Assembly: GCA_002269645.1 (NCBI GenBank) | Contig: NIVC01001879.1 | Span: 62,001-126,000, forward strand | Source of the DNA: Macrostomum lignano | Lineage: Eukaryota | DNA: 64,000 bases | Reading direction: 5' to 3' | In this document: one piece after another, positions 13,865 through 16,800 of the stretch | Layout of the letters: each line of letters begins with the position of its first letter | Position numbering within the stretch: position 1 is the first letter of the stretch | Program-made: the position numbers and the translations under genes | Notes under the pieces: model-generated | Told to the model about the DNA's origin: nothing | The model's input: the letters and a program-made list of their open reading frames with translations, nothing else | The model's database searches: none

Positions 13865-16800
13865 TTAGCAGCAGCAGCACATGCCTCCCGTTGGCTGAGG
13901 TCGCCACACCATCACCCGTTTGTTCTGCTGCGGCGTGACTAGCACAGCCATGCTGCCCTCCTGATAATTCACATCCTTGTAGCTCAGCTCCGGGTTCGCC
14001 TGGCACTGCCAGCTCTTGCCCAGCTTCCTATCCAGCTCGTGCATCATCTGCCGCTCAAACTCGCTAGCGTTCTTGTCGTTGCCGGAGCGCCTCCACTTGG
14101 AACCAACCTGAGCTAGCAGGCGCTTGACTTCATCCAAATCCTTCGGCTCCATGTCTGAGAACTCTACGCTGATCAACCTGACAGGAGTGGGTGGCGCTTC
14201 TTTATTGGAGTATCTGTTTTGAGCTGCTCAACGACTTTTTTCTACAATGCAGACATCCTTCTGACAACATTCACACGGATACGCTGTATCGTAGTCATCA
14301 GGGGGGGGGGGGCAGGGCTGGGACATGCTAATGCTTTGTCCCCTATACCCATCTCATCTTGTGATCCGTTATGGAAATCAATAATTTTGTTTAAATATAG
14401 CACCTATAGTGCCAAAATGAGTGCCTGCGGCGCTAAAATGAGTGTATGCGGCGCTAAAACGAGTGCCTGCGGCGCTAAAATGAGTTCCTGCGGCGCTAAA
14501 ATGAGTTCCAGTGGCGCTAAAATGAGTGCCTGCAGCGCCAAAATGAGTGCCTGCGGCGCTACGTATGCAGGCACAGCGGCCTGTCCTGACTCTCTAATCA
14601 TGAAGTGAAAACTTTTTCAAACTCTTTTTTAAAATCTGATGCTTTCTCGATAGTTATCTGCTCAAACTCACGAAGGATCATCGTCGCCTAATTCGATTGC
14701 GACCTCTTCGGGTGAAGCTTTCGAACTAAAATCGACAAAAAAGGATCATAAAACATCAATTGTCAAGGTGAGATTATTCATCTTGAAAACAGACTGCATA
14801 TAGTAATATTCCTTACTTCACTCCTGCTCGAGCCTTTGCGGAAGTTTGCGGTCTGAAATTTTGATCGATTTTAAGATTACGTTCGTAGAGTCGATAATAT
14901 TCTGAGACTCAGCTAGGTAATTACCGGCAACTGTTTTCACTTACTGAATAACTTCGTCTTCTACTTCTTGCGGTTCTTCTTTCGGTTTAGGTGGCTCGGT
15001 TCTCACTTTCCTGGCCTGTTGAGGTCTAAATATGGAAATAAATTCAACTTAGTCTAGGCCTGATCAAATTATAAACTAAATGAGGACTTACTCAATGTTC
15101 TCCTTGACCTCGTCCTGTTCAACGGGTTTGCTGAAAACAAAAACAAAAAAGTGTTTGTTTGTTTTAATTGCTACATCACAATAATCTTTATTCCTTCATT
15201 CTGGATTCAAACCTAGGGGTTGCTCGAGGAAGTCGACTCGTGCGTCTAAAAGGTAAGTGGTAGATTTTGATTATTTCTTTAAAAAAATAACTTTATAAGA
15301 TGACGGGGTAACTGACCTGTTAGCTCTGTCGGAGTCTGCAGGCTTTTGCTGTTGCTGTTGTTGACGTTGGGCCACCGTTTTTCGTGCCTCCCGACTATAA
15401 AACGCGAAAAGAGGGAATCCTAATTTTCTAAACGAAAAGCTTTATGGTTATTAATAGAGCCATAAGAAAGGCATGACACGAAGGGAATGGGATATTAGAA
15501 AATTAGCAAAGGTAGGATTAAAGGCGATCTCAAATCTCAAATCGATCACAAAGGAAGTCCAAAGTGAGTACCCAAAAGTGGGTAAGCGCAGGGCCGAATG
15601 AGTCAAAGAGAAGCCACAGGCGGCGTCTACTCATATATGGAAAACGAGAGCTGCATAAGTTGCGCCGAAAAACACGTCCCATGCGCGTGACTCGTGATGA
15701 TCACGACCTTGAACTGCCCTTTTACCGGCGTTGCCAAGCAACCGATTGACGTCACCTGTCTAGCCATACTGTTATTGGCAATTTACATGAGGTTAGTGCG
15801 CGACACCGAAAAGACTTGGGAGAACTGCGGAATGACTTCCGAATAGAATGGAGGTTGAGATGGGGGGAAAGGGAATGAATGGTGTTGACACAGGGATGAG
15901 TCATCTCATCTCACAGACAGACAGACAGACAGACAGACACTAAGACAGACAGACAGACAGACAGACACTAAGACAGACAGACAGACAGACAGACAGACAG
16001 ACAGACAGACAGACAGACAGACAGACAGACAGACAGACAGACAGACAGACAGACAGACAGACAGACAGACAGACAGACAGACAGACAGACAGACAGACAG
16101 ACAGACAGACAGACAGACAGACAGACAGACAGACAGACAGACAGACAGACAGACAGACAGACAGACAGACAGACAGACAGACAGACAGACAGACAGACAG
16201 ACAGACAGACAGACAGACAGACACACAGACAGACAGACAGACAGACAGACAGACAGACAGACAGACAGACAGACAGACAGGCAGACAAACAGTCTACTTA
16301 CAGCTTGTCTTCATAAATTTTTTCATCCAACCCGAGAGTCTCGCAAAACTCGGAGAACGTGAACTTGCCGTCCTTATTCGAGTCAAACAATCGAAGCCAT
16401 TTCTGCAAAAAGAACAGTGACGCTGCAATATCAGGTTGCAACAATTAGTTTGCCAACGTCGAAAAATTCAAAATACACCCTCTGTTAGGCTGTTACGTTG
16501 TTTTGAAACTTTTTTCGACCGATCGGAGGAGTTATGGTATATACTATTGACAACATAGTTGGAAAGTAACATCCATGGTTTCTACAACAGAAACATCCCC
16601 TCTACAATTCAGAAACACCACCTCTACAATCCTGAAACACCACCTCTACAATCCTGAAACACCACCTCTACAATCCTGAAACACCACCTCTACAATCCTG
16701 AAACACCACCTCTACAATCCTGAAACATCACCTCTACAATCCTGAAACATCACCTCTACAATCCTGAAACACCACCTCTACAATCCTGAAACACCACCTC

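Follow-up and report, generated by a model that had tools for sequence, protein, structure and literature searches.

A TAL-type EF-hand/dynein-light-chain-like gene of the free-living flatworm Macrostomum lignano with a linker encoded by six small phase 2-2 exons

A stretch of 64,000 nucleotides (nt) from the genome of the free-living flatworm Macrostomum lignano (assembly GCA_002269645.1, contig NIVC01001879.1, positions 62,001 to 126,000 of the forward strand; hereafter the window) contains a gene for a protein with the architecture of the TAL (tegument-allergen-like) family, in which an N-terminal pair of EF-hands and a C-terminal domain resembling a dynein light chain (DLC) are joined by a long, charged linker. 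Six small exons, E3 to E8, all of phase 2-2, encode this linker. It is probable, though well short of certain, that we are dealing with an expressed gene of TAL architecture whose six phase 2-2 exons build a disordered tether, and whose dominant transcript contains all of them. The original prediction, made from the sequence, had gone further and read the six exons as a splice-tunable spacer with the logic of schistosome micro-exon genes (MEGs).

Nine exons can be read on the minus strand of the window between 17357 and 13865, spliced by AG/GT borders (Table 1), and every internal exon is preceded by a pyrimidine-rich tract and AG and followed by GT. Phase 0 is seen in the first intron and phase 2 in all later ones, and the spliced open reading frame (ORF) of 849 nt specifies 282 amino acids (aa). 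Along its entire length this product matches GenBank PAA63035.1 (hypothetical protein BOX15_Mlig017693g2, Macrostomum lignano) with 100% identity. The gene span of that record (3493 nt, on the same contig NIVC01001879.1) corresponds base for base to window 17357-13865, and GenBank already lists the gene, with this exon structure, under the label of a hypothetical protein. For the six small exons (78, 33, 39, 81, 36 and 54 nt; 15394-14672) the coordinates, sizes and phase 2-2 of the original prediction were all correct. The Mlig_3_7 annotation is not ab initio, but was built with StringTie, a de novo transcriptome and the TACO meta-assembler, followed by TransDecoder (PMC5730564). Because it derives from RNA-seq assemblies, a transcript with all six small exons underlies the GenBank model. 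The gene is genuine and expressed, and is one of three near-identical copies. The introns between its linker exons are very short relative to the species average of 1.1-1.4 kilobases (kb) (PMC5730564, Table 3).

Table 1. Exons and small introns of the TAL-like gene in the window
Feature	Position in window	Strand	Length and properties
Exon 1	17357-17244	-	114 nt; ATG at 17357; EF-hand 1, residues 1-38; phase-0 intron after
Exon 2	16402-16302	-	101 nt; EF-hand 2 with canonical loop; end phase 2
Linker exon E3	15394-15317	-	78 nt; phase 2-2; first half continues helix 65-88; weak donor GTCAGT
Linker exon E4	15245-15213	-	33 nt; phase 2-2; basic; RRTS across E3/E4 junction; weak donor GTTTGA; not in 241-aa models
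Linker exon E5	15130-15092	-	39 nt; phase 2-2; acidic; identical in all three paralogs
Linker exon E6	15025-14945	-	81 nt; phase 2-2; Pro, Glu, Lys-rich
Linker exon E7	14852-14817	-	36 nt; phase 2-2; basic; not in 241-aa models
Linker exon E8	14725-14672	-	54 nt; phase 2-2; acidic; not in 241-aa models
Last exon	14177-13865	-	313 nt including stop codon; whole LC8/DLC-like domain (residues 180-275) and tail GGMCCCC
Five introns between the six linker exons	15316-14726	-	71, 82, 66, 92, 91 nt

The assignment to the TAL architecture draws on sequence searches and on a predicted structure. Pfam EF-hand_7 matches residues 5-59 (E 2.6e-7, 31.3 bits, with a cut-off of 30), and in a phmmer search of the PDB the best matches are two TAL-family proteins, 5x2e (Clonorchis CsTegu20.8, 'tegumental protein 20.8 kDa', E 1.2e-8) and 9voa (Fasciola FhCaBP4, E 8.4e-8). 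Direct reading of the sequence gives a canonical loop for EF-hand 2 and a loop deviating at positions 6 and 12 for EF-hand 1. The AlphaFold2 model, built on a 26-sequence family alignment, has an EF-hand domain at residues 1-64 with predicted local distance difference test (pLDDT) values above 90, then a confident helix (65-88) running into the first half of E3, then a region of pLDDT 32-63 (residues ~90-177), and finally an alpha/beta domain at 180-275 (pLDDT ~90, first beta strand at 182-186) that comes entirely from the last exon. Searched against the PDB with Foldseek, the model has full-length FhCaBP4 as its top match (E 1.3e-8) and also matches dozens of LC8 dynein light chains (target-normalised template modelling score, TM-score, 0.85-0.89; root-mean-square deviation ~1.6 Å), the DLC-like domain of FhCaBP2 (5fx0, E 4e-4) and the EF-hand domain of CsTAL3 (5x2e). 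A conserved Trp (W235) is invariant in the family alignment. The defining features of the family are present: an N-terminal EF-hand pair and a C-terminal DLC-like domain, both in one chain, with TAL/tegumental proteins as closest relatives; S. japonicum P0024 and Paragonimus P0009 are among the relatives that have both domains. Pfam, phmmer, AlphaFold2 and Foldseek together bear out the TAL-like EF-hand/DLC protein that had been proposed, and the two-domain architecture is confirmed at the level of the predicted model, the DLC-like domain being recognised by fold, not by sequence. Residues 180-275 share their fold with LC8/DYNLL proteins, but differ from these in sequence (identity 13-16%, Pfam score under threshold) and in being fused to EF-hands and to a cysteine tail.

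The linker peptide comprises 107 aa, of which 38% are charged and 12% hydrophobic, and the net charge alternates from exon to exon (E3 to E8: +3, +3, -2, -2, +2, -5). With the low pLDDT of residues ~90-177, the expectation of a long, charged and probably disordered linker held up. Disordered, charged segments rich in Pro, Glu and Lys and encoded by many small symmetric exons are familiar from the PEVK region of titin; the likeness is of a general kind, there is no homology, and the linker described here is far smaller in scale. An LC8-binding motif within the linker (PQT at the E6/E7 junction) was considered and is too weak to claim. The protein ends in GGMCCCC, and cysteine-rich tails recur in a subset of relatives, among them Schistosoma japonicum P0024 (GGCCCC), Paragonimus P0009 (CCSCC), P0007, P0012 and P0020. 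Judged from these residues, S-acylation of the tail and anchoring of the protein to a membrane may reasonably be inferred.

The length of the linker sets the protein apart from the characterised members of the TAL/CaBP family of parasitic flatworms (SmTAL1-13; CsTegu20.8 = CsTAL3; FhCaBP1-4), with which it shares the EF-hand pair and the DLC-like domain. A core of one phase-0 and one phase-2 intron is common to it and a S. japonicum 'tegumental protein', and the cysteine-rich tail to it and members from S. japonicum and Paragonimus. In FhCaBP4, for instance, the EF domain spans residues 1-90 and the DLC domain residues 101-191 (PMC12347358). Characterised TALs have linkers of ~10-25 aa, compared with about 90-107 aa here; further differences are the free-living host, the distribution of the linker over six small exons, and a DLC-like domain so diverged that Pfam misses it. 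The premise that known TAL proteins have a short linker is correct for the characterised members, but not for the family as represented in databases, since two-domain relatives whose linkers measure ~50-85 aa came up in the full HMMER search. These are P0058 (219 aa) from the trematode Calicophoron, P0033 (223 aa), P0025 (211 aa), P0076 (232 aa), and P0007 (233 aa) and P0010 (242 aa), the last two encoded on intronless contigs of ~950 nt from the environmental Joint Genome Institute (JGI) sample 3300019149, presumably transcripts. The protein of the window has the longest linker of this two-domain set. P0007 is its closest relative outside the species (E 1e-21), with an acidic linker of similar character and poorly conserved sequence. 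Two other proteins, P0014 and P0016, have an EF-hand pair of TAL type together with a long, basic linker and carry a Ribosomal_L6e domain at the C-terminus (E 1e-31 and 2e-34); they are either real fusions or merged gene models.

Within M. lignano itself at least two kinds of EF-hand/DLC proteins occur: the long-linker, cysteine-tailed form in three copies, and a canonical short-linker protein, P0015 (BOX15_Mlig005207g1, 177 aa; locus L005, 2001-7165). P0015 resembles the protein of the window in its EF-hand pair, in a 114-nt first exon and in its intron phases, and its Dynein_light domain scores 78.5 bits; it differs in having a short linker, three exons only and no cysteine tail. This is of consequence for the published distribution of the family, or of the fusion that defines it, which has been described as 'found only in parasitic flatworms' (PMC4300400), 'found only in trematodes' (PMC12347358) and 'specific to parasitic flatworms' (bioRxiv 10.64898/2026.04.22.720116). 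Such a restriction, which concerns distribution and is not a structural feature, does not hold for the gene described here, whose source is free-living, and P0015 contradicts a limitation of the fusion to parasitic flatworms or trematodes. Our literature search found no paper describing TAL-type proteins in free-living flatworms. For specialists, the presence of TAL proteins in a free-living flatworm might be the more notable and useful point, ahead of any idea about splicing: claims of restriction have been used to argue for parasite-specific drug and vaccine targets, and transgenesis is possible in M. lignano, so that the largely unknown function of TAL proteins could be studied in a tractable free-living model.

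The coding status of the six linker exons can be judged from the paralogous copies. Both P0003 (BOX15_Mlig017693g1, locus L001) and P0004 (locus L002) are annotated with the identical 282-aa structure, and at both loci all nine exons are kept with their AG/GT borders. Conservation of exons relative to introns was dropped as proof of the exons, as the copies are too alike (exons 96-98%, and four of the five small introns equally conserved); the ratio of synonymous to non-synonymous changes was used in its place. Across the six linker exons of the three copies, 11 changes are synonymous and 4 non-synonymous in the annotated frame, compared with 3:12 and 0:15 in the other two frames. With ~72-77% of changes expected to be non-synonymous, the binomial P is 5e-5 to 4e-4. 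All six substitutions that distinguish the paralogs in E3 are synonymous, and E7 of copy L001 carries three synonymous changes and one non-synonymous change. This pattern of substitutions indicates that the linker exons are translated in the annotated frame and are under purifying selection. Third codon positions varied more than the small introns (P 0.001) only with intron 6-7 excluded post hoc, P being 0.12 with it included, and this comparison is not relied on.

One substitution outside the linker concerns the Ca2+ sensor of a paralog. P0003 (L001, 6001-13759) carries E56K in its counterpart of window exon 2 (16402-16302), a change at position 12 of the EF-hand 2 loop. The glutamate at this position normally binds Ca2+ through both of its oxygens, and the P0003 copy may have lost Ca2+ binding at its only canonical site.

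The shared phase of the six exons becomes less surprising when the gene is compared with its short-linker relatives. Gene structures were mapped exactly for the S. japonicum 'putative tegumental protein' P0024 (185 aa) and for M. lignano P0015, and each has three exons; the comparison of exon numbers that had been suggested as a check yields three for these relatives, and not nine. Their exon 1 ends in phase 0 just before a conserved 'KW' (after 114 nt in P0015, as in the gene of the window), and their exon 2, of 95 nt in P0015 and 92 nt in P0024 compared with 101 nt here, ends in phase 2 a few residues past 'LG[LV]'. Their last exon encodes the short linker and the DLC domain together, and the six small exons sit where P0024 and P0015 have a single phase-2 intron. 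Since any exon arising inside a phase-2 intron must be 2-2 to be tolerated, the symmetry is largely a consequence of origin. Its interpretation as a hallmark of tunable splicing fails on this point, the phase having already been set by the single phase-2 intron of the relatives. Six independent intron gains, all in phase 2, would have a probability of ~(1/3)^6. The six exons may have come from exonisation, old duplications or something else; tandem duplication was considered as their origin and rejected, as no direct repeats connect them.

The comparison with MEGs likewise does not go far. Olson et al. define micro-exons as shorter than 70 nt and divisible by three, and MEGs as genes of seven or more exons in which micro-exons make up at least half and a run of at least four occurs (PMC7653826). 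Only four of the nine exons qualify here (33, 39, 36 and 54 nt), and the longest run is two, since the 78- and 81-nt exons exceed 70 nt. Another description has ~80% of the coding sequence (CDS) of MEGs in symmetric exons of 6-36 bp, with a signal peptide and a secreted product (PMC5825161), whereas exons of up to 36 nt account for 69 of the 849 nt of the present gene (8%), and all six small exons together for 321 (38%). Inspection of the N-terminus found no hydrophobic leader that could serve as a signal peptide; it forms the entering helix of EF-hand 1 (helix 2-10, pLDDT 91). Consecutive small exons that are divisible by three and can be skipped in frame are shared with schistosome and cestode MEGs, but MEG exons make up nearly the whole of a secreted protein, while those described here link two folded domains. 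The gene is not a micro-exon gene; the likeness ends at small exons divisible by three, and the MEG-like logic ascribed to it finds no footing in either published definition.

Several observations weigh against the reading of a TAL-type protein with an exon-built tether and a dominant all-exon transcript. The C-terminal match to Pfam Dynein_light (PF01221) reaches 15 bits and lies under the gathering threshold of 29.1. In alignment, the first half of E3 corresponds to a helix that in the relatives is specified by the start of the last exon, so that a pure insertion of exons into an old intron is too simple, and at least one further phase-2 intron or a shift of acceptor is needed. Neither similarity nor direct repeats were found among the six exons. 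Finally, two models of the older ML2 annotation, P0002 and P0005 (UniProt, 241 aa), are without exactly E4, E7 and E8 (33 + 36 + 54 = 123 nt), and with them skipping could be more than a minor event.

Taken at face value, these models agree with an alternative in which the six symmetric exons are combinatorial cassettes with MEG logic, and in which isoforms set the distance between the Ca2+ sensor and its scaffold by tissue or stage. We find this alternative doubtful. As had been predicted, any subset of the exons can be skipped without a frameshift: all 64 combinations of inclusion and skipping leave the ORF open and no junction codon makes a stop, the products having 56 distinct lengths from 175 to 282 aa. 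The two 241-aa models represent two different loci: by their substitutions, P0002 belongs to L002 and P0005 to the locus in the window. In all three copies E3 (GTCAGT/GTCTGT) and E4 (GTTTGA) have weak donor sites, a common trait of cassette exons, and the strong conservation of four of the five small introns between the copies would also fit. On the other side, the RNA-seq-derived annotation has a single, all-exon CDS at each of the three loci, with the limit that only isoforms of at least 0.75 of the major one were kept in it, so that minor forms would be lost. Protein searches gave no skipped form except the older models. When the 282-aa product was run in a word-indexed search against 5.8 billion proteins, the GenBank cluster and the 241-aa cluster were the only results; to these, a full HMMER search over 1.84 billion representatives contributed just the frameshifted ML2 model P0006, and no other isoform. 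No isoforms of the nearest relative P0007 were found in a search with P0007, and an exact look-up of P0002 matched no contig. The ML2 annotation is unreliable in this region: P0006 has E7 in the wrong frame and aberrant junctions, and the assembly is reported to be of much lower base-level accuracy (PMC5730564). As every linker exon is symmetric, a gene finder may leave out any one without disturbing the frame. The symmetry is, moreover, forced by the phase-2 context common to the three-exon relatives, and the gene falls outside the published definitions of MEGs. Introns of 66-92 nt are usually spliced by intron definition, which disfavours exon skipping. Biologically meaningful combinatorial skipping seems to us rather unlikely on this evidence.

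Two further explanations involve the same exons. Inclusion might matter for short motifs and not for length, E4 contributing a putative basic phosphorylation-type site (RRTS/TP) and E8 an acidic, strand-like VAIELGD. This is an improbable reading, although the exons concerned are in keeping with it: E4, E7 and E8 are those absent from the 241-aa models and have a joint net charge of zero, RRTS is formed by E4 and the preceding Arg, and VAIELGD resembles the first DLC beta strand ISVEFSD at the start of the last exon, with the common pattern [VI]x[IV]E[LF]xD. Motifs of this length may, however, arise by chance; in the AlphaFold2 model E8 falls within the stretch of low confidence and the strand at 182-186 is that of the last exon itself, and the linker sequence is poorly conserved with P0007. 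Alternatively, some or all of the six small exons could be artefacts of annotation that are not in the mature mRNA, the real linker being short. Gene finders and read aligners have difficulty with small exons (PMC7653826), and the older models omit three of the six. We nevertheless hold this explanation to be very improbable indeed, given that the same nine-exon CDS comes from RNA-seq assemblies at three loci, that the synonymous bias, to which E7 and E8 contribute, appears only in the annotated frame, and that the AG/GT borders are conserved in all copies. Our literature search found the gene identifiers in no paper, and the papers on the TAL proteins of S. mansoni and S. haematobium do not discuss exons, linkers or isoforms.

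According to the explanation we favour, a long disordered tether with a dominant all-exon transcript, the DLC-like domain would dimerise as that of FhCaBP4 does, and the cysteine tail, if S-acylated, would hold the protein at a membrane. The EF-hand sensor would then hang on a long flexible tether (~90 disordered residues) following the helix by which the EF-hand domain is prolonged. Exons would have to be symmetric to preserve the frame, whether they were added to one ancestral phase-2 intron context or carved out inside it. The all-exon form would be the dominant transcript, and skipping of single cassettes, most plausibly those of 33, 36 and 54 nt, might yield a minor form. More speculative, and as a whole unlikely, is a broader scenario in which the EF-hand/DLC fusion predates parasitism and one branch of the family evolved, in a free-living flatworm, an exon-modular, alternatively spliced and charge-patterned tether to a membrane-anchored, dimerising LC8-like domain, with cassettes E4, E7 and E8 setting the reach of the sensor or its regulation. 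Should the skipping of E4, E7 and E8 be true, the gene would offer a simple system for the effects of tether length and charge on a two-domain Ca2+ sensor. It is also a clean example of how small exons of the same phase can build a disordered spacer inside one ancestral intron, and it cautions that frame symmetry alone is no proof of regulated splicing.

Some observations on the gene and its copies may be added. Window positions 17358-17372 contain a pyrimidine-rich tract and AG (ccatttttag) ending 2 nt upstream of the start ATG. This element resembles a 3' splice acceptor and could be a spliced-leader trans-splice site or the end of an intron in the 5' untranslated region; spliced-leader trans-splicing has been reported for 38.8% of M. 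lignano genes (PMC5730564). Divergence among the three copies is mosaic. Four silent changes in E3 (15317-15394), each G>A or C>T, are specific to the window and fall within 19 nt, and intron 6-7 together with E7 (14817-14944) has 15 + 4 changes in L001 only, neighbouring small introns having at most two. Such a distribution suggests gene-conversion tracts or clusters of mutations among the paralogs. Intron sizes are very unequal between the copies (841, 4858 and 533 nt for intron 1). Tandem repeats fill the long introns, with 28 copies of a 22-nt unit in intron 1, (ACAG)x95 in intron 2 and seven copies of a 21-nt unit in the last intron, and (AGAT)x135 lies upstream of the gene; the repeat blocks occupy window positions 16590-17201, 15913-16292, 14414-14561 and 18466-19005.

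Next downstream of the TAL-like gene, on the minus strand, comes a gene for phospholipase B with a single exon (9768-11354; 528 aa, Pfam E 6.5e-122), which is syntenic in the two paralogous loci as well and beyond which lies a 415-aa ORF with a Ribosomal_L1 domain (1832-3079, minus strand). Between the TAL-like and phospholipase B genes is a purine-rich, (GGAGA)n-like low-complexity block of ~700 nt (12029-12767), and the strong GC and AT skew seen in that 2-kb bin is due to this block. A retrotransposon is present at 26083-28674 on the plus strand, in the form of an ORF of 863 aa containing reverse-transcriptase and RNase H domains. Two large arrays are found further along the window. That at 35702-37535 (1.8 kb) has a 12-nt core (CTTTTCTGTGGC) with T strongly over A, and is open on both strands (644 and 619 aa). 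The other, at 47148-56746, is a tandem array of ~9.5 kb made of 24- and 33-nt units (CTTCAGTGTGAGTGACACCCCATC...), whose open frames reach 3114 aa on the plus strand, and 1680 and 1382 aa on the minus strand; its Pfam matches are only of repeat type and of low meaning, and the array represents either a satellite or a giant gene for a repeat protein.

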